From Phallusia mammillata (lineage: Eukaryota), in NCBI GenBank assembly GCA_965637545.1, contig OZ281494.1, positions 15,934,001 through 15,998,000 on the forward strand: 64,000 nucleotides of DNA, in the 5' to 3' direction. This document shows, one piece after another, positions 21,155-33,504 of the stretch. Both the position numbers and the translations under genes were made by a program. The notes beneath the pieces were generated by a model. The model saw only the letters and a program-made list of their open reading frames with translations. It was not told the DNA's origin and did no database searches. How positions within the stretch are numbered: position 1 is the stretch's first letter; every line of letters begins with the position of its first letter.

Positions 21155-24100
21155 ATGGAAGGTTCGTTCTCACTGCCGGAAGCTATGCAATGGAGTGGCA
21201 ATGTGTCACAAAACTGGGTTAAGTTTATTAGGGGATTTAGGCTTTATTTGACAGCTGATGGTTATGACGGAAAGGCTGCAAAAGTTAAAACATCTATGTT
21301 GCTCCACGTGTTGGGAGAGCAAGGTCAAACCATCCACTCAACATTTAAATTTGAAGAAGGACAAGAAATGCACTTTGAAACTGTGGTCAATGCCTTCGAA
21401 AGCTACTGTTGTCCGAGAAAGAATATCACCAGCGAGCGATACAGGTTTTTTTCTAGAAATCAAAATGATGGTGAAAGAATAGATGTTTTTATAACCGATT
21501 TAAAAAAACTGTCTAAAAGCTGTGATTTCGGTGAACTTTGCGACTCATTAATCCGAGACAAAATTATTATTGGTATCAAGTGTGATCAACTTCGTCAAAG
21601 TTTGCTGCGGGAAGAGGAACTAACGCTTGAAAAAGCTATTAAAATGTGCATAACAAACGAAACAGTAAGATCGCAAATGACAATGTTTCGATCAACAAAT
21701 TCTACAAGTTTTAGCTTGGATGCTGTAACGCGAACCACGTGGTAATCAATTACCAGCGCCTCGAGTTTGCAGATTCTGTGCCTTGCGACATGACGTCAGA
21801 GCGTGTCCTGCCTGGGGAAGGCGATGCTTAAAGTGTGGTGGAAGAAACCACTTCGCTCGATGTTGCAGTGCAGCTAATCACCCGCAAGCGCAACGCGCGG
21901 ATACAATTCAGACGTACAACATGCAATCTGTAAGTACTATTAGTTCACCAAAAGATTGGCTTGTTGACATTTTTGTGCTTTCATGTACACTTCGTTTTAA
22001 GATAGACACGGGAGCCCAAGTAAATATTTTGTCACGAAATGATTTTCAAAAACTTCAGGGACGTCCATATGTTTCTTCTACTAATATTCGATTGATCTCA
22101 TATACTGGCCACCATATTCCAGTTTGTGGGACAATTAGTTTAACACTTCAATACAGAGAGCAATCATTTACTCTACCATTTGTTGTTGTGGAGATTAATG
22201 CATTGCCTATTATAGGATTAAATGGAGCAGTAATTCTTGGCCTAATAAATAAACTGGAACCGATTGTCAGTGACGAACAAAATTTGCTGTCCAGCTTTTC
22301 AGATTTATTTCGAGGGTTGGGTTGTGTTCCAGGTTGTCACCGAATAAAGACCGATAGCAGAGTTTGTCCCGTAGTCCGTCCCAGCAGAAAAATTCCATTT
22401 GCACTCAAAAACAAACTACAACAGGAGCTACAAAGAATGGAAAGCATGCAAGTAATCAAAAGAATAGAAGAACCAACTAAGTGGGTGAACTCTCTTGTAA
22501 TAGTAGAAAAGAAAAACGGAAAACTAAGAGTTTGCTTAGATCCGCGAGATTTAAATAAAGCAATTTTGCGTGAGCATTTCTGTCTTCCGACTAGAGAAGA
22601 AATTATTAGTCAATTTTCAAATGCTAAAGTATTTTCTAAACTCGACGCTTTGTCAGGGTTTTGGCAAGTAAAGTTGGATGAAGATAGTTCTAAGCTTTGT
22701 ACGTTTAACACTCCGTTTGGACGGTACAGATTTTTGCGCATGCCGTTCGGCATTTGTTCTGCGCCAGAAGTGTTTCACAAGTTGGTGTACATGATGTTTG
22801 AACACATGAACGGCGTTGTAACGTCTATGGACGATATTGTGGTTTGGGGTTCAACTAAGCAGGAACATGACATGAGGCTTAAAAATGTGTTAACGGTTTT
22901 GCAACGCAATAATCTGAAACTCAATAAGGAAAAATGTGTGTTCGGTGTAGACAAGATTACTTTTCTTGGTGAAGTTGTTAGTGCTTCAGGTGTTCAACCT
23001 GATCCAAATAAAGTTCATGCAATAGAGCAACTAAAGCGTCCTCAATCTAAGGGTGACTTGCTGAAATTTTTGGGAATGGTCACGTACCTAGGTCGTTTCA
23101 TTTCCGACTTGTCTACTAAAACATCTTCTTTGCGTTTGTTATTGCATAAACGGAGCAACTGGGAGTGGACGCAAGCACACGAAATGGAATGGAGGAATTT
23201 AAAACGGCTGGTCACAACTGCCCCAGTACTTCGGTTTTTCGACCCCAAGAAATCGATCAAAATTTCGGCAGACGCATCTAAACATGGACTTGGAGCTGTA
23301 ATTTTGCAACAGCATGACAACATGTGGCAGCCAGTGGCTTATGCGGCAAGAGCTTTAACAACCGCTAAAACAAGGTATGCACAAATTGAAAAGGAATTGC
23401 TTGCCCTTTGCATGTGAAAGATTTTATCAGTATGTTTATGGTCAGAAATTTGTGGTAGAAACTGATCACAAACCTCTCATAGCGTTGTTTCTCAAGGAGT
23501 TAAATAACTGTCCGTTGCGCATTCAACGTCTAATGATCCGGTTGCAAAGATTTCATTTCACAGCAGAGTTTACTCCAGGTAAATTCATGCACACAGCTGA
23601 TTTGTTATCAAGATGTGTGGAGAACAGTGTGTCCGTCCAATCGCTTTCTTGTCATAGTGTATGTGAATATGTAGATCTAATTGTATCCGCTATTGATTGT
23701 ATGCCATTAGTTAAACAAAAGTTACAAAGTAAAACCATATGTGACGAACAGTTGCAGTTTGTCATGCGTCTTGTAAATAATGGTTGGCCTTTACATAAGC
23801 GTGCTTGTCCTGTTTTAGCAAAACCCTTTTGGGATGTCAAAAATGAACTTTCTGTTGTTGACGGTATTTTGTTTCGTGGATCTCGAATAGTTGTTCCAAT
23901 GTCTATGCGCAGTTATTTTTTAGAACGTGTGCATGAAGGCCATTTGGGTGAAGTAAAATGCAAAGGACGCGCTCGGGAAAGTATATATTGGCCTGGGTTA
24001 TCCAAAGACATATCTGGTTTGGTATCTTCCTGTGCCATTTGTGCAAAATTCAGGTCACAGCAACAACGCCAACCGTTAGAACCTCACCAAGCTCCTTCTT

Positions 24101-24858
24101 ATCCGTTTCAGAAAGTGGCAACTGACCTGTTCTATTGGAACCGAAAAATGTTTTTGGTAACAGTGGACTACTACTCCGGATATCCAGAAGTAACCCCGTT
24201 GACTACAACTTCTGCGGCGTCTGTTATAAGTGGTTTGAAAACTATTTTTTCCAGGTTTGGAATTCCCGAAACTGTTATTAGTGATAACGGTCCTCAGTTT
24301 TCTAGTGAGGAGTTTGCAAAATTCGCCGAGGAATGGGGCTTTGTTCATTTAACCTCGAGTCCACATTATCCACGATCTAACGGACTGGCTGAGAGGAGTG
24401 TCCAGACAACGAAGCAACTACTTAAAAAAGCTCACGCTAGTGTACAGGATTTTAACAAAAGTTTGTTAATATTTAGGAGTGCTCCTCTCCTTTGCGGAAA
24501 ATCACCTGCACAGCTTCTCATGGGTCGGCAAATCAGACACACGATGCCTCCGGATATCGAAACGTTAAAAAGTTCAACTTGCCGTCCGTTTGGAAAAGAA
24601 AGAAAACAACAAAAGAAGTATTATGACAGGGGAACAAGAAACATGCTGCAATTACAAGTGAACACTCCTGTAAAACTGTACAATACTCAAAACAAACTAT
24701 GGGATCAACAAGGAACTATAGAAAAACAGTTATCTCATCGCTCTTATCTTGTAAAAACTAGTGATGGTGTATTGTATCGGCGTAATCGTGTTCATTTACG
24801 TCCATTGAATGTTATTGTGAATCCTTACCCTTCGAGACGTCAGTTAAGTTCAATTTAA
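21155..24858 (+). pseudogene. Gypsy gag-pol polyprotein broken by two frameshifts
   Basis: Gag 21155-21745; zinc knuckles CRFCALRHDVRACPAWG..C..CGGRNHFARCC lie in the next frame; protease FKIDTGAQVN; RT core RMPFG..SMDDI; RNase H DASKHGLGA; integrase HEGH..C..C and D,D,E (ATD, DNG, LAERSV). Frame changes at about 21729-21742 and about 23405-23410. Confidence 0.95.
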
Positions 24859-25001: not shown

Positions 25002-27108
25002 CTTACTAGATTTATGGTTTGTAACATAGAAGCAAAATAATGTTGAATCTGCTACAAAAAAACTTTTAAACAGCCATATTTTAGGTCCAAGACTTTGCTG
25101 ACAATCAAAAACAGCAGTTTGGATCAGCACAAGGTGATGCTAAATAAAGTATCACATCGTCTTGTGTGAAGAAAATAGCCATTCTTGTTGGATTTGTGTC
25201 TTAAATATTAATAAATGCATGCAAACTACTTATATTGCACAATAAAACATTTATTACCACTCAATAATGATTTATTTCAACATTAACTGAATAATGTATT
25301 CCCAGTACACATACACTAATACACATCACAATCAATCTACGCATATTTATTGGTTATTACACACTGGAATACATGCGTCCTATTAATCTACAAATCATAT
25401 CTGCAAAAATCGCTACACAAATGCCTAAAATAAAAATTATCGTCATTTTTCCACTCTCTCCCCATTGCCCGCAATGCATTTTTGGGGCTTCCTTTTGCAG
25501 CCGTCATTACGCTTCAATTTGCTTCAAAAATCACCCAACCGTTCAACGGAGTAGCGCAATCCAGTGTTTATAGAGATCAGTGGCTCTGTCCGACAAACCG
25601 TCAACAGGGGTTGTGACTTTTTCATGACACTTGTCACTGTTAGTGACAGGCGTCAATGACAGGGCTGGGGTGTCACTAAATCAGTGACAGGGCGCCATTA
25701 AATCAGTGACAGGGCAAAATCAGTGACAGGGCGTTCTTGCGTTCTTGCGATAGTATGAACACAAGCGAATTTATTAGGTCTTTGCTTGTAAGGGTTTTCT
25801 TTAAAAATTGCAAGCGGCAAAGGTTTTAAATGTAAATTTCGTGCAAAAATGTACCTCATGACTTTAATTTTTTGGTATAATCTTTAAATTCTGCAAGCAG
25901 CAAAGGTAAGTGTGTTTTTGAACATTTTTGAACTTTCATTGCCTGCCAGGCAGTCTGATGAGCTCTAACAGGGCGAAAAAGTTCAATCAATTTGTTTTAA
26001 GTAGTTTTTTTTTATTATGTAAACATGTCTAACCTCTGTTTTGTGCCACATTGTCATATCTGAATATTTAACAATATGTAATGTTATGTGCAAAAAGAGG
26101 AGATTATCTGAGTTTCCAAACAAAAAAACGTTTTGTACACATGAAGACCAACACGTTTAAAGCTGCTCAAAAAAATAGTGCATCTATAGATAATAGTGCA
26201 TCTATAATTCTATAGAATTTCCTAGCTTCAGGACAATGTTACGCGTGGTAATGTCTTTTTACCCATTTAAACTGATTCTGCCATATTTACACAAAAAATT
26301 GTTGATGTTTTTTGTTTTCTTTTTTTTTCCAGACAGCCACAAACATTTAACGATTGGAAACCCAAGATTTAAAGATAACCAAGATTAACACAAGTATTTG
26401 CTTGTTGTTATTGGTGTTTGAGGTGTTGTATTTAATTGCACCTTTGAATTGTGTGCACATATTTGTAATTTTCAATGTCTACTTGGAGATTTAAGTTGAT
26501 ACATTATATAACCAGAGATTTTAAAAAATACTGTGTTTAGACAAAATAAAGAAAAAAACAACTGCAAATGAATCACCATGTTTCGAGTTTGTTAAAAGGG
26601 GTTAAATGGCTAAAAAAACAAAATTAAGTTTAATATGGTTCATTATTTTAAAGTTATTTTGTGGCCAACTTAGCCAATTATATTCGCTCTGTGCGATAAA
26701 TTTCTAAGTGTGTTTAAATTGGTATGGATGTTTTATGTGTTTGTTAGGTTAGGAATTCCATAGGTTCTGTAATTTAAATAGCTTGTTACCTGGTAAACAA
26801 TCAAATTCATTGAGTTCGCAAATTTCATTTGGCAACATGGGCAGGAAGAGTCCAGAAGCTTTGATGAAAGCTGACCAGAAGCTCTACTGATCTTTCACAT
26901 GTATGTGTTAGAGCAATCAATAATTGTAGTTCCGTAGTGAATAATGTATTATTGATTCAATAATTCTTGTGTATAATGGTATTTTACTTTAAAATCTCTT
27001 ATTTGTTGAAATATTTTCAAGTCCGAGTCAGAAAATGCTCTTTTTGTTCATTCTACAAAAACGTTTTTATTACACACAGTGATTTGTTACCAAATGTGTT
27101 ATTTCAGG

Positions 27109-28900
27109 ATGGTGTATCAGCAAGCAAGTCAATATCTTACAAGATGCACGTGTTTTAGACTCTCCACAGAGTATGAGGTGTGTTGAAGGTTTAAATGGTT
27201 CAGTAAATTTAAAGTCCATTTTTCAATGGTTTTACTAGCTCTGCTGTAAAATATTGTCATGTGATGAGTTTTATCAAAATCCTAAATTTAACTATAAGCA
27301 TGCACTAATGGGTTGTGCAAATTTTGTTTTAGTTAAGCATTTGCAATTGCAAGCACATACTGCGCATGACTATTGGTGAACGTCATTCAGTTGTCAACCC
27401 ACAAAGATGGCTCTGCAACACTTGCCTTACAACTGAGTCTGTTTGGACATGTCTAAGCTGCCCTAATGTTGCTTGTGGAAGGTAGGAACCATGGTCAAAA
27501 CACTAAACAAAATGTTCTACAGTCTATAAAAATGAATAAATAATGTGTGGACTGTTTTGGATGACCATTTGAGTATTTATAAAATGGTATATAACCTACA
27601 GATATATCCATGAACATGCATTAAACCATTATTTGGAATCTGGTCATTCATTAGTGATTGATGTCAATGAACTCTATGTATATTGCTATGCTTGTGAAGA
27701 ATATGTTCTCAATGACAACAAATCGGGGGACATCAAGGTGCTATGTGAAACTTTACAGGTAGGCAAATTTGCGTTATTATCTTTTTTAAATTGTAGTTGT
27801 GTCAGTCCAAACAATTTTGTGGCATGGTTTCTTGGTCGGAAATTGCCTGGAAAATAATTTATGTTGTATCATGTGACAAAAAGTATTAGCTCATAAATTC
27901 TGTTTGTAAAATTTCAATAATATTAAGTTAAACAATTTAGGCTGCTTTTGTGCAGTAGGTAAAATTTGAACAGTTTATGTATTGTGTGCCATAGTAAATA
28001 TTAAAACTTCAATCAGAAATTCTTAACATTTCTCCAGGCAATTAGATACCAAAACTTTACTGGCACAACTCGTAGTGGACACACACTGAGGACAGCCACA
28101 ATAAGTGCAGATGAAGATGTTCAAATGAGGAGAAGATTACAGCAGCAACAACTTGATAGAGATGATAGACTTTTCACTGCCATTTGGCATTCAAGGTACT
28201 TTTTCACACAGTAAAAGTGCACAAAATTGTGTTACTCCAAAAACTCGATGCCCAAATTTGCCAATTTTCATAAGATTACATAATTTTAATTTTTTTTGTC
28301 TTTACTATGTAGGTTTGTTCGACAAAGAAAAACCTTCAGAAACTGGCGGAACTATGTTCGTAACAAGGACCAACACTGTCAGAGTGATGACGAACAACCA
28401 TGTGCTACAGTCACACTACAGTGAAACACAGAACTACAAGAAGACTTCATTGGAAAACTCGATGACCACCTTGAAACCTTGTCAGAATTAAAGATCTGCA
28501 ACAAGTTAATGCTGATTTTCCATTAAACACAGAAAGGAAGGGGATTGATACAAGGTTAATAAGGGAAATTACACTTGATCCTGTTTAAGGTGTTTTACCA
28601 GCATTATCTGTTGTGTTTATGTGGAAAAAAATCAATACTGGTGTCTTATTTCAGTAAAACACCATCTCCAGACTGTTCTGTATTTACTCTATCCAAATTG
28701 AATACCACATTTCGTTTTTTTAGGTGCTCGGTCATTTGCAAAAGTTCCGCCGATGTTTACTTGCCGTTCGTGACATCGAAATGGATGAAACCACTGGGTG
28801 CTACGAAGATCCACAAGTTTCGCCATCAAGCAAGTTACGAGTCGCTGGAAGAAGGTCCACCATAGAATTAAGAGCCATGGCATTTTAGCAGGCTAGTCTT
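27109..28900 (+). pseudogene. USP49: Truncated, decayed USP44/USP49-like deubiquitinase 5' fragment (ZnF-UBP plus start of catalytic domain)
   Basis: Exons 27109-27177 (tentative), 27333-27481, 27602-27758, 28038-28195, 28313 onward, 28723 onward. ZnF-UBP: [81 protein letters not shown] matches the segment after the Cys box. In-frame stops after about 28430; no GLxNLGNTC box and no downstream catalytic exons. USP44 versus USP49 not resolvable. Confidence 0.85.
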
Positions 28901-29652
28901 TTGCCAGAAACAATCTATTCGAGCAACTGCTTGTATACAGAAAATACTTACATCTCATGACAACTCAGGTTTACTTGTAGTAGGGATTTGACTTGAGGAC
29001 TCAAGTCTAAATCAATGACATTTCTTAGAAATAAGGAAAATAAACTTTTTAAAGACCTTGCCTTTCAAAATAAGGTCAAGTCTTCGAAATAAGAATAGGA
29101 TGGCGACCCTGAGTATAAGATATACAATATAATTAAGGCAAGTTTAAATCGTTTTATGTAAACAAGGCACTAAACTTTACCAGTTTTAGTTCAATTCCAC
29201 ACAGACTATTAAGATTTTACTTATAGCCTCACTCATGTTGGTAGTGTACCTCACACTGTGCTTCATGGACAAAGCGCCTCATGGCGATATCCCTGACATA
29301 TAACTTCTCAATATGGCTGTAGACTAGCCTGCTAAAATGCCATGGCTCTTATAAATGCAAAGCTTTGTTTCATTTGGTATGAAAATGTATTGGTAAGACC
29401 ATTAAATATTTTCTAGTCTTGGCAATGCCCTGTTTGCTTATAAATTGTGATGTTATGGATGTGTGTATTGGTTTATTCTATTTGTTGTTTTCTTAACTGA
29501 AGTCTGTCCACGCCAGATGGTAGATATGGTCATGTAAATGTGCCATAACAGCTCCAGTATTTAACCCACTGGCAGCCCAAGTTATAAACCTTTCTTATAA
29601 TCCGACACACTCCGGTCTGGTTGCTTTGGCAGTTTTGACAGCCTGAAACAAT

Positions 29653-29923
29653 GGGTGGTACTAAATACTGCATGTTACCGTATGTTATTCTGCTTAAAAT
29701 ACTGCATGGTATGTGAAATGCGAGAATACAAGCCCCAACAAGGGAAAATTAGACCAGATTATAGTATTGTTTTAATTACAAACCTTCACCCAACCAGAAT
29801 AGCTCTAACCAAAAGTTCGCAAAACTATATTTTCGTAAAAGCATATTCAAGTCCTTTACAACTTCCTGCCGTGTTATAACATGCGGTATACCATGCGGTC
29901 ACATGCGGTATTTAGTACCACCA
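29653..29923. mobile_element. MITE with about 30-bp TIRs and 8-bp TSD, nested in the Pack element
   Basis: GGTGGTACTAAATACTGCATGTTACCGTATG versus the reverse complement of CATGCGGTCACATGCGGTATTTAGTACCACC; TSD GAAACAAT at 29645-29652 and 29924-29931. Confidence 0.8.
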
Positions 29924-30509
29924 GAAACAATCGCCTATCAGCGTTACAATTTAAAAGTGTTGATTGGGTGATTGTGGTTTGATTTTTTATTATTTTGCAC
30001 GTAGCATCCCCCCTAAGATGGGTATTTTTTTTGAATTTTAAGTGTCAATTGCATTGTCACAGGAGAGTATTAATCTATATACTAAAAGCTAGAGAATATT
30101 GTGTGCTTGCTTAGCTTTTTAAGTTCTTTATCACACCTTGTCTTCACTTTAAGCATTCATAAATTCGTTGTTTTTTGTTCAGTAATAAAAGCTGTCTGAA
30201 ATAGTTTGTCATGCTTTAGAATTACTGTAAAAGTTTTTGTACCAACACCAATATTTTTGGAAAACTCAAAACAAAAGAGTCATTTAACACAGTAAGTCAC
30301 TGCTGTAGTCCGGGGACCCCTGGGGCAATTTCTCCCATCTATCTTGATTCTTTGCTAGTGTGTTGTATTCCATGATCTATTTTCCTGTCCACCCCTGAAC
30401 ATTACCAAAGCCAGTTCGTTCTGGGCCTGCCTTGTCTTCTTATTCCCTCGTCGGTCCTGTGCATGATGGTGTGTGTAAGAGTTCTATGGCGACATGTTAC
30501 ATGGCTAAC

Positions 30510-31100
30510 CCATTAAAGCTACGTTAAACAAGATTGGCGACAGTATGCACTCTTGAAATACTCCAAAGTCTTAAACTATTTTAGTGCACTTCCATTGGTT
30601 AACACAGCATTGATGACCTTTATATTATACAGTGATTTGATCAGGAGGATCAGGAAGAGACTGATACTATGTTTCTTCATGGTGCCCCACAGGGCCTCTG
30701 TGACCAAGTTCTTGATGGTGGTCTCTTTTTTTCACCTAGTATTCAATCTGTTAGACCAGTGGTTCTCAAGACTGTAGACTGTACCATCATGTCCTACCCT
30801 TGTTTGTTCTTCAGATAAGACACTCTTGATTTGAGGTATTAGTTTACCTTTTTTGGTATCATGACTATCAAAGATTGTGTCCACGTGGGCCACACTTATC
30901 TCATATGTATTCAAGATCTCCTGTGTTATCCAGCAAGGCTGCTTTCTGGTTCCAGCCTTTTCCAAAGTTTTCATCACAGTCGCATTCATGATTTTAGAGA
31001 ACTCGGATGTTAATTCTTGAACATTATTTTCCAACAGTGCATCAAATCTGCTTTCAATCTTTATTTCAAACCCCTTTCTGCAACCTGGCTCTTCAAACGA
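30510..31100 (-). mobile_element. Degraded RTE-type LINE ORF2 fragment
   Basis: Minus-strand translation SRFDALLE..TRKQPCWITQEIL, then EALWGTMKKHSI..LIKSLY..AVLTNGS and, after a frameshift, VGVFQECILSPILFN (RT motif GVxQGCxLSPxLF); stops and frameshifts present. Confidence 0.8.
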
Positions 31101-31134
31101 CAAAGGAAAAATACTCTTTTTTTTCAAAAAATAT

Positions 31135-31350
31135 AAATCAGTGACAGGGCGTCAGTGAATCAGTGACAGGGCGTCAGTAAATCTGTGACAGGGTGTCAAA
31201 ATCAGTGACAGGGCGTCAGTGAATCAGTGACAGGGCGTCAGTGAATCAGTGACAGGGCGTCAGTGAATCAGTGACAGGGTGTCAGTAAATCTGTGACAGG
31301 GTGTCAGTAAATTTGTGACAGGGTGTCAGTAAATCTGTGACAGGGTGTCA
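31135..31350 (+). repeat. Subterminal tandem array, 10 units of 20-22 bp (RAATCWGTGACAGGGYGTCAGT)
   Basis: Direct reading of the sequence; the same core occurs three times at 25677-25735. Confidence 0.95.
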
Positions 31351-31827
31351 TTGACAGGCGATAGGTGACAGCCTGTCACTGAATTGTCACAACCCCTGTT
31401 GACCCCGCCTCCAAACCGTTGTGAGAAAAACGCTTTGACTGGTCATGCAAGGAAATTGGGTCGTTGTCATACTCACACTCACACAGTCGATCGATCGATC
31501 GGCCTGCCTGCGTCCCTGCGATGTGAGTACAAGTTCAATGCATGTCTAGTTAGCACGGCAGCTGTAGTTTTGCCTGACCGGCGTGGTGATATAACACAAG
31601 CCATGTGTTGCACATCTGTTACCAGTTCCAAGTTGAAGTTTTAAAAAGAAAATCGTAAACTGATGAAAAGAAAACTGAGAACTCGATTGTTAACGAATAT
31701 TACGTAGTTTGGCAAATGCAGTTTTTAACACAATTTTGTTTGTATTTTATCAGGATAAAGTTTTTATTTGGTTTTATGTTTCGTAAACAAATGTTCTGTT
31801 GTAAATGAAAATACATCAGTAGTCAAC

Positions 31828-33504
31828 ATGAATGTTTCATCTCTACTTGAAGAAGCAAAGGTGGTTTTTGGTAAAACCACAGATTTTGTGGATGTTCAAT
31901 TGACGGCATTTAAACCATGGGAAATTGTTTCAATAACAGTTGTTACACTTGTCCTGACACACCTGGTTTATAATTTTGTGTTTGATCATGAAAAATCCTT
32001 AAGTCAACGGTTGAAGTTGGGCTTTTTCTACTATGTCAAGCGTTTTCCGATTATACGCTCCATCGTAGAAGACAAAATGAAGCCGGTTTTGCATGAAGTG
32101 TCTGCCACCAAGCTATTTCCACTTAAACCTGGCATGACATACAAAAATGTTATGCCTTATGTTGGAAAATCACACACTTCAATTTTAAGAGAAGTAGACG
32201 AATATCTGTCATTGGATACAGTTGACTGGTCAAAGGGTAATGTTTCTGGCACGGTGTATGGAGGTGACCCTGATCTTACCCTTGTTGCTTCTACCATGTA
32301 TCATAAGTTTGCCTGGTCCAACCCTCTTCACCCCGATGTTTTTCCATCCTTGAGAAAAATGGAAGCTGAAGTGGTTCGAATGACTTGTTCGCTTTTCAAT
32401 GGTGATCCTAACGCATCATGTGGTTTTGTTACTACAGGTGGAACAGAAAGTATACTACTGGCCTGCAAGACATATAGAGACTGGGCTTACTCCAAAGGTA
32501 TTAAGAAACCAGAAATGGTCATACCTATAAGTGCACATGCTGCTTTTGAAAAAGGTGCTGCTTATTTCAAGATCAAACTTAAGCATGTTCCAGTAGATCC
32601 AACAACAAGAAAAGTGGATTTGCATGCAATGAAACAAGCCATCAACAAAAACACATGCATGTTGGTAGGATCAACACCTCAGTTTCCACATGGTGTTTTG
32701 GATCCCATTGCAGATATTGCAGCTTTGGGTAAAAGGTATGGTGTTCCTGTTCATGTTGATGCTTGTCTGGGTGGGTTTCTTTTGCCTTTTATGGGAGAGG
32801 CTGGATTTCCTATACAACCATGTGACTTCTCTGTGCCTGGGGTTACAAGCATTTCCGCTGACACCCACAAATATGGATGTGCACCAAAAGGATCATCAGT
32901 GATTATGTACAAATCCACTGAATTTGCACATCACCAATACTTTGTATCACCTGACTGGCAAGGAGGTATTTATGCAACACCAATGTTTGCTGGAAGTCGT
33001 AGTGGAGCAATTGTGGCAGCTTGTTGGGGCACTATGGTGCACATTGGACGTGAGGGATACATCAGCAACACCAGAAAGATTATTTCAACTGCAAGGACAA
33101 TTGAGAATGGTCTTGCACAGATGAACAATTTATTTGTGTTTGGAAAGCCAGAGATGTCTGTCATTGCTTTTGGTAGTATGGATTTTGACATTTTCCGACT
33201 TTCTGGAGAGCTTACCAACAAAGGGTGGAATCTAAATACTTTGCAGTTTCCACCTAGCATTCATTTATGCTGTACTATGCCCCACACTAAACCTGGAGTG
33301 GCAGATAGATTTCTTTCTGATGTGAATGATGCAGTGAATACAATCATGCAGTCACCTAAATCCAAACCAGCAGGTGCAGGTGCAATTTATGGCATGGCTC
33401 AATCCATTCCTGATCGCACCATTGTGTCCTCGATTGCACATGGGTTTCTCGATGCTCTTTATGATACAACTCCATTTGCAAGAGGTGAAAATGGAAAAGC
33501 ATAA
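31828..33504 (+). CDS. SGPL1: Sphingosine-1-phosphate lyase, single coding exon
   Basis: Uninterrupted 558-aa ORF from ATG 31828. N-terminal TM (WEIVSITVVTLVLTHLV), SGTVYGG, NPLHPDVFP, TTGGTESILLACK, HVDACLGGF and PLP-lysine motif SISADTHKYG. Likely 5' UTR intron 31523-31753 (GTGAGT...TTTTATCAG). Confidence 0.97.
   Translation: MNVSSLLEEAKVVFGKTTDFVDVQLTAFKPWEIVSITVVTLVLTHLVYNFVFDHEKSLSQRLKLGFFYYVKRFPIIRSIVEDKMKPVLHEVSATKLFPLKPGMTYKNVMPYVGKSHTSILREVDEYLSLDTVDWSKGNVSGTVYGGDPDLTLVASTMYHKFAWSNPLHPDVFPSLRKMEAEVVRMTCSLFNGDPNASCGFVTTGGTESILLACKTYRDWAYSKGIKKPEMVIPISAHAAFEKGAAYFKIKLKHVPVDPTTRKVDLHAMKQAINKNTCMLVGSTPQFPHGVLDPIADIAALGKRYGVPVHVDACLGGFLLPFMGEAGFPIQPCDFSVPGVTSISADTHKYGCAPKGSSVIMYKSTEFAHHQYFVSPDWQGGIYATPMFAGSRSGAIVAACWGTMVHIGREGYISNTRKIISTARTIENGLAQMNNLFVFGKPEMSVIAFGSMDFDIFRLSGELTNKGWNLNTLQFPPSIHLCCTMPHTKPGVADRFLSDVNDAVNTIMQSPKSKPAGAGAIYGMAQSIPDRTIVSSIAHGFLDALYDTTPFARGENGKA

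Follow-up and report, generated by a model that had tools for sequence, protein, structure and literature searches.

Transposons with terminal inverted repeats (TIRs) that carry gene pieces in multiple copies are common in plants and very rare in animals, where a survey of Pack-TIR elements in 100 genomes recorded 370 cases, four of them multicopy families (Tan et al. 2021, PMC8277862). The model drawn from that survey for multicopy elements is a template switch followed by transposition, and chimeric transcription was frequent (PMC8277862). Here we describe an element at positions 25602–31411 of the window, a 64,000-nucleotide stretch of the genome of the sea squirt Phallusia mammillata (contig OZ281494.1, positions 15,934,001–15,998,000, forward strand), whose cargo is the 5′ part of a USP44/49 gene. 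The element belongs to a Pack-type family of known kind and is an unusually large, young, spliced and segregating example, found in a tunicate.

The described animal Pack-TIRs, Pack-hAT-N8_XT of Xenopus tropicalis and Ssk-FB4 of Drosophila melanogaster (PMC8277862), resemble this family in holding an unlinked duplicate of host sequence, in distinct target-site duplications (TSDs), in transposon-chimeric cargo transcripts and in breakpoint microhomology that fits the survey's model. They differ in that one frog example is a capture of 291 bp at three chromosomal sites (PMC8277862), whereas here at least 23 copies are present with a 2.5-kb multi-exon cargo and working splice sites, the carrier appears to be KDZ/Zisupton-like, and the resident homologue of the cargo cannot be its donor. 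Plant Pack-MULE and Pack-CACTA elements (PMC8277862; soybean Tgm-Express, PMC1947982) likewise amplify intron-bearing fragments whose transcripts are spliced and whose protein is mostly not under selection, but they come from another kingdom and superfamily and often hold several genes, while the present family holds a single gene fragment and nested repeats. Zisupton/KDZ elements (PMC12730594) share the 8-bp duplications, and autonomous-looking relatives of the present family encode a CxC4 protein; in contrast, the termini here are short and asymmetric, the element contains no transposase, and the KDZ catalytic model misses the relatives. Helitrons also shuttle captured gene fragments that may cross species, and their cargo can differ from the host gene (PMC6544945), but they are rolling-circle elements without TIRs or TSDs, and transfer of the present family is something that we only infer.

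Element ends, copies and mobility

Alignment of approximately 28 copies set the span of the element in the window to 25602–31411, between 8-bp TSDs reading CAAACCGT at 25594–25601 and 31412–31419. The family's left end is CAACAGGGGTTGTGAC and its right end GTCACAACCCCGCCTC. Across the roughly 30 left and 28 right ends aligned the termini are asymmetric, forming an imperfect inverted repeat in which the outermost five bases are unlike and are followed by conserved blocks, GGGGTTGTGAC and GTGACA. The left terminus of the window copy, with its 16-nt end, lies at 25602–25635 (+) and the right terminus, located by end alignment and pattern search, at 31374–31411 (+), where it is interrupted by a private 10-bp insertion (31397–31406) that is missing from the other ~28 right ends. 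A repair footprint and a retained older end are both possible origins of this insertion.

The original prediction, made from the letters alone, had bounded the element at 25600–31403 by a perfect 18-bp TIR. That one element is bracketed here is correct, but copy alignment places its true ends at 25602 and 31411. The two inverted 18-mers exist as well, at 25600–25617 and 31386–31403, exactly two sites in the window where 0.05 would be expected by chance; their perfection, however, is accidental, as the first two bases (GT) belong to the TSD and the right arm was created by the 10-bp insertion. Other parts of that description stand: the 18-mer occurs just twice in the window, in agreement with the claim that no further terminus lies within the unit, and a TSD flanks both ends, as expected for the two ends of one element rather than separate solo fragments. 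The shared subterminal motif corresponds to tandem 22-nt units (AATCAGTGACAGGGCGTCAG-like) in identical orientation inside both ends, which repeat analysis resolved into about three units of 17–22 nt at 25677–25733 (+; AATCAGTGACAGGGCG...) and an array of ten 22-nt units at 31134–31350 (+).

Genome-wide, the 16-nt left end has 56 exact matches, and each element end has more than 40 matches in its own genome, which combine into elements of ~6.3 kb. At least 23 copies of 5.8–6.3 kb were found, of which 22–23 carry the cargo. Based on end loci and 2-kb pieces of the copies, they are 97.3–99.9% identical at the substitution level, with gapped identities of 94–97% over the first 1.7 kb and last 1.5 kb in BLAST against the paired end loci. 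Matching 8-bp direct duplications, each copy having its own, were present in ~17 of 20 end pairs of other copies. The segment at 25602–31411 is therefore not the single local capture initially proposed but one copy of a young DNA transposon family, which is non-autonomous: the element has no long open reading frame (ORF), and no transposase domain was found in the pieces scanned.

Mobility of the window copy is documented by an exact empty site of the kind that the original prediction had proposed to look for. One DNA contig from an independent sample joins 25593 directly to 31412, with exactly eight letters in common, indicating that the insertion is polymorphic and recent. The repeat-rich surroundings, with a Gypsy-like element and another repeat just upstream, might be taken to suggest a native or segmentally duplicated pseudogene caught between solo repeats, or an assembly artefact, and no transposon cargo at all. 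We give this account almost no credence, as the same interior stands between the same ends at no fewer than 22 unrelated sites that each have a separate 8-bp duplication, the empty site is precise, and the element is contained in sequencing runs of nine studies.

The captured gene piece and its transcripts

The cargo occupies 26399–28867 (+) and aligns from about 26399/26426 on, introns included, to the resident USP44/49 gene (L061, 7258 to 3214), with the introns matching at about 75–89%; their retention bears out the predicted capture at the DNA level. The cargo is missing from a 4.2-kb sister subfamily whose right end is GTCTC and which a genome-wide end-pattern search found in at least seven copies. 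In a three-way comparison with this subfamily and the resident gene, 26399–29414 stands in place of ~0.9 kb of backbone, and the junction between left backbone and cargo is marked by a 5-bp microhomology, GTATT, at 26394–26398.

The second zinc-finger exon of the cargo (exon B) is found at 23 genome sites, 22 in elements and one at C4:23.0 Mb, where the resident gene lies on the minus strand with no element ends nearby. The assembly has no other intact USP44/49 gene than this locus, which lies on a different chromosome from the window and retains the complete linker exon (300 residues) along with the two zinc-finger exons, the Cys box, later exons and the His box. The part of the linker exon (exon D) that is missing from the elements has a single occurrence in the genome. 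Compared with the resident gene, ~1.35 kb is lost between 28496 and 28500, and with it the Cys-box exon and the greater part of the linker exon; the captured part ends short of the His box. An intact parent gene elsewhere had been anticipated; an intact gene does exist, but as a homologue and not as the direct donor (see below).

Exons were searched one by one and joined solely to read frames. As predicted, the cargo contains ZnF-UBP exons, with Pfam PF02148 (zf-UBP) recognized in exon A (27333–27481, +; first half of the domain, profile positions 1–22) and exon B (27602–27758, +; second half, intact in this copy; E 1.8e-10). The best solved relative is the ZnF-UBP of USP49 (E 1e-16), followed by HDAC6 (4e-7), and the pattern of zinc ligands is kept. 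Exon C (28038–28195, +) encodes the same protein sequence as the resident gene, with nine synonymous differences. The truncated exon D (28313–28554, +) contains a TGA stop at 28422–28424, where the resident gene has CGT and which is common to all element copies, followed by the deletion junction at ~28496–28500 and a new donor at 28555. Downstream of the stop lies a piece of exon F (28724–28867, +), just past the Cys box. The truncated catalytic start that had been reported is not present, since the Cys-box exon was deleted and the piece in question is the exon that follows it. We also rejected 28530–28580 as a decayed Cys box, as this segment is intronic in the resident gene.

Expression was assessed from four contig sets placed on 25500–31499. 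The RNA-like sets X12 and X17, which come from two different studies, contained GT..AG joints for all introns that had been predicted: 25905|26333 (in both sets), 26900|27108, 27177|27333, 27481|27602, 27758|28038 and 28554|28724, with loose ends at 28197/28311 standing for the intron 28195|28313. Depth was 0.6 in the intron at 26901–27107 compared to 121 in the adjoining exon. Exon 1 (25739–25905, +) lies in the transposon backbone and is covered by RNA contigs over 25739–25903; its start is unmapped, and its donor GT at 25906, called in the original prediction, is the one used. Exon 2 (26333–26900, +) starts in the backbone and crosses the cargo junction, and exon 3 (27108–27177, +) is followed by exon A. 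Among element-specific contigs, one begins with the tail of a nested element at 27617 and another spans the deletion junction to 28897. The family is transcribed and spliced at the captured gene's own sites, with its first exon in the transposon backbone.

Spliced in this way, the window copy has a frame of 215 aa comprising the ZnF-UBP only, which runs from a start codon formed at the exon 2/3 junction (26899, 26900 and 27108) to the stop at 28422–28424. The ATG at 27173 was rejected as a start codon because splicing as seen in the contigs places a stop behind it. The 215-aa frame is whole in just two copies, those in the window and at C5:4.38 Mb, and is broken in at least 20 of the 22 copies examined. 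Exon B is uninterrupted in three copies (window, C8:10.16 Mb and C5:4.38 Mb), and the C8 copy is frameshifted by four additional bases right behind the exon B acceptor. The 19 others carry a 503-bp hAT-like element at the equivalent of 27617–27628 (end CAGTGGTTCTTAACC, 8-bp duplication CATTAAAC), such that the disrupted form has been amplified most.

Substitution patterns and the missing donor

Within the family, the cargo exons drift neutrally: variant types were predominantly nonsynonymous (36 vs. 9 synonymous), and variant density in exons equaled that in introns. This drift makes the spliced RNA most likely a by-product rather than the output of a selected gene. A selected role for the element-borne ZnF-UBP frame, either as a decoy for free ubiquitin tails or in regulating the resident USP44/49 by way of its protein or of small RNAs, would be in line with the intact frame in the window and C5:4.38 Mb copies, with the transcription and splicing of the family and with the preserved zinc ligands. 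We nevertheless consider it improbable, given the excess of nonsynonymous variants and the lack of a variant deficit in exons, the broken frames and the amplification of a broken subfamily, the 14 upstream ATGs in the leader, and the position of the stop 130 nt ahead of the last splice junction. The ubiquitin-binding decoy suggested by the original prediction is accordingly unsupported.

Comparison with the resident gene gave the opposite pattern. In exons A–C, 27 of the changes separating the window copy from the resident gene were synonymous and 3 nonsynonymous (dS 0.345, omega 0.024), and at least two of the latter three were private to the lineage of the window copy. Exon F, which is untranslatable in the element as it lies behind the stop and the deletion, differed by 9 synonymous and 2 nonsynonymous changes in an ungapped alignment (dS 0.331, omega 0.056). 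With family-majority states, the long branch between family and resident gene held 29 synonymous and 3 nonsynonymous changes, a ratio differing strongly from that within the family (Fisher's exact test, p 3e-8). If the resident gene had been the source, ~60 nonsynonymous changes would be expected in exons A–C, compared to the 3 observed. Nor can the pattern be put down to lasting selection on a truncated zinc-finger protein, because exon F shows the same constraint. Divergence that is nearly all synonymous instead implies that, until not long before the family burst, the cargo was part of a USP44/49 gene that was full-length and under constraint. These patterns indicate that the donor was a functional USP44/49 gene other than the resident one, absent from the assembly and at a dS of ~0.33 from the resident gene. 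The donor may have belonged to a sibling species, with the cargo arriving by transfer or introgression, or it may have been a paralogue that is now lost or one that is unassembled.

A first possibility is that horizontal transposon transfer or introgression brought in the family, or its founder, from a close relative of this species, together with a piece of that relative's own USP44/49. The cargo would then be a passport stamp of a family that was assembled in the sibling species, captured its USP44/49, entered the sea squirt and burst to ~23 copies. The dS of ~0.33 with nearly all changes synonymous, even in the untranslatable exon F, fits this scenario, as does the lack of a second USP44/49 gene in the assembly. 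The backbone is just 70–91% identical to the nearest resident subfamily, and a 483-bp MITE-like insert at the right edge of the cargo (28869–29351, bounded by a 38-nt inverted repeat) had no relative above 80% identity outside the family among the 40 of 889 candidates scored, with every copy of at least 97% identity sitting inside the Pack family. Other observations run counter to it. The hAT-like element nested in exon B was rejected as evidence of foreign origin, as its best free relative, leaving aside a 39-bp indel, is ~93% identical at the substitution level, a normal figure for a resident family. A sequencing run labeled as another organism was likewise rejected as evidence of a second host, because it has the P. 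mammillata assembly's own array junction at low depth and resembles admixed DNA. A chimera with the sister subfamily (described below) shows present coexistence only, and the left end had no counterpart in a metagenome scan. We regard entry from a sibling species as plausible and hold it tentatively.

The substitution pattern would fit equally well if the donor were a second functional paralogue or a presence/absence gene of the same species, lost or missing from the assembly after capture, as all that is required is a functional and diverged donor. That the introns can still be aligned at 75–89% is also in keeping with such an origin. It calls, however, for an old duplicate that stayed strongly constrained and then vanished in the brief interval since capture. 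There is no trace of such a gene in the 312 contigs, and the read evidence listed contains no loose ends toward a second locus. We treat this origin as possible, with low confidence.

Candidate transposase sources, surroundings and significance

Candidates for the source of transposase were sought among relatives of the family. A more distant family, likewise flanked by an 8-bp duplication, matches the Pack family letter for letter in its 16-nt left end and also has the asymmetric right end. Three of its copies carry ORFs 3–3.5 kb inside the left end, and its subterminal repeat unit is unlike that of the Pack family. One of these ORFs matches the KDZ-associated Pfam model CxC4 (33 bits, above cut-off), and in a library of 1.8 billion proteins all long homologues of the neighboring ORF carry CxC4 just upstream. 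At the locus L089, CxC4 was the sole match, with most ORFs having none in Pfam and with searches of NCBIfam and a protein atlas and a word search also empty. Zisupton elements generate 8-bp target duplications (PMC12730594), and with moderate confidence the shared ends, duplications and CxC4 match point to a KDZ/Zisupton-like family. Although the TSD length fits hAT elements, we rejected this superfamily, as the termini CAACA/GAGGC are not of the YARNG type and the relatives' ORFs have no hAT domain (no genome-wide hAT search was made). The sister subfamily was rejected as autonomous partner, having no long ORF and just a weak RVT_1-like piece.

Taken as a whole, the evidence makes it highly probable that this is a young Pack-type TIR family with DNA-level capture of USP44/49, spliced by-product RNA and a non-resident donor. 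A founder element took up ~2.5 kb of USP44/49 DNA: the 5′ leader, the start codon, the ZnF-UBP exons and intervening introns, a portion of the linker exon and one exon of the catalytic domain. Template switching during repair or replication is the probable mechanism, as the 5-bp microhomology at the left junction suggests. The Cys-box exon was next lost by deletion, and the stop codon appeared. The element is probably moved in trans by a KDZ/Zisupton-like transposase. RNA of the family comes from the left part of the transposon and is spliced at the sites of the captured gene.

Several observations weigh against this explanation or narrow it. Three full-length C4 copies (10317689/10324035, 11608871/11615218 and 12513067/12519384) have unlike 8-mers on their flanks, which may result from same-chromosome recombination between copies or from flank deletions. 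The empty site is known from a single contig whose shorter side is 30 letters long, and dS rests on ~100 synonymous sites. The RNA label of X12 and X17 is a software guess backed solely by splicing and intron depletion, and the contigs carry no strand, level or transcript ends. Their letters are those of the majority subfamily, so that expression is shown for the family rather than for the window copy in particular, and 27371C and 27392C in one set are the letters of the resident gene's exon A, so that its joints 27177|27333 and 27481|27602 may stem from resident mRNA. Neutral drift among 22 young copies is also compatible with a function of one copy or of the RNA. With regard to the transposase, the KDZ catalytic model (PF18758) misses the related loci and matches other loci only, and no autonomous copy bearing the Pack family's own subterminal repeat unit was found.

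The remainder of the element consists of right backbone in common with the sister subfamily (29415–31133), which includes a second inverted-repeat unit at 29654–29922. An ORF scan of this region detected a 131-aa ORF on the minus strand (30732–31127) that is possibly LINE-derived. The LINE fragment originally reported here was not confirmed, as 30735–31127 on the minus strand has no Pfam match and the corresponding fragment of the sister subfamily gave a sub-threshold match to RVT_1 (E 0.011).

Further relatives and arrangements of the family were observed across the genome. From C2:5619863 onward (L089, L091), an autonomous-looking relative with C2H2 and CxC4 ORFs is broken ~6.5 kb in by a Copia-like insertion whose frames span 959 and 394 aa, and a short ORF with an HW motif lies beyond it. 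End-pattern matches included tiny derivatives of 91–360 bp. Of the lone left ends, L087 and L090 are short or satellite-filled relatives, and L088 was discarded as a chance 16-mer. Part of the transposon has turned satellite-like at C3:19.56–19.65 Mb (at least 25 units) and on contig C40 (at least 9), where units of ~3.72 kb follow one another in tandem and each joins the right end of the sister subfamily to an identical flank. A chimeric element of 5.5 kb at C3:19656126–19661628, with an intact 8-bp duplication (CTATTATG), is of the sister type in its left 2.8 kb (98–99.5%) and of the Pack type in its right 2.65 kb (96.5%), from the middle of exon F on, indicating that template switching or recombination recurs in the family. 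Three inverted pairs of copies 80 bp–8 kb apart (C6:15523778–15536238, C5:17335208–17351192 and C4:10303392–10324035), together with a cluster of six copies at 8.8–12.5 Mb on C4, suggest local hopping.

In the window, an SGPL1-like single-exon ORF (31828–33504, +; Pfam Pyridoxal_deC) follows directly downstream, as predicted, on the same strand as the element transcripts, with its first ATG 417 bp from the right end of the element. Upstream, the immediate neighbor is not SYNJ2BP, as had been assumed, but a Gypsy-like long terminal repeat retroelement (21155–24858, +) with gag, protease–reverse transcriptase and RNase H–integrase frames of 196, 544 and 493 aa, and a further dispersed repeat lies at 25300–25585.

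The polymorphic insertion may affect the SGPL1 promoter, and its segregation in the population offers a natural test of such a regulatory effect. In a laboratory chordate host, gene capture, exon shuffling and their consequences could be studied while they occur. The contrast between neutral drift within the family and nearly synonymous-only divergence from the resident gene is a clean and testable signal of a missing donor, and suggests either that the fragment crossed between species or that the gene was lost very recently. If an origin in a sibling species is true, the captured gene fragment would both date a recent transposon invasion of a chordate and identify its source.

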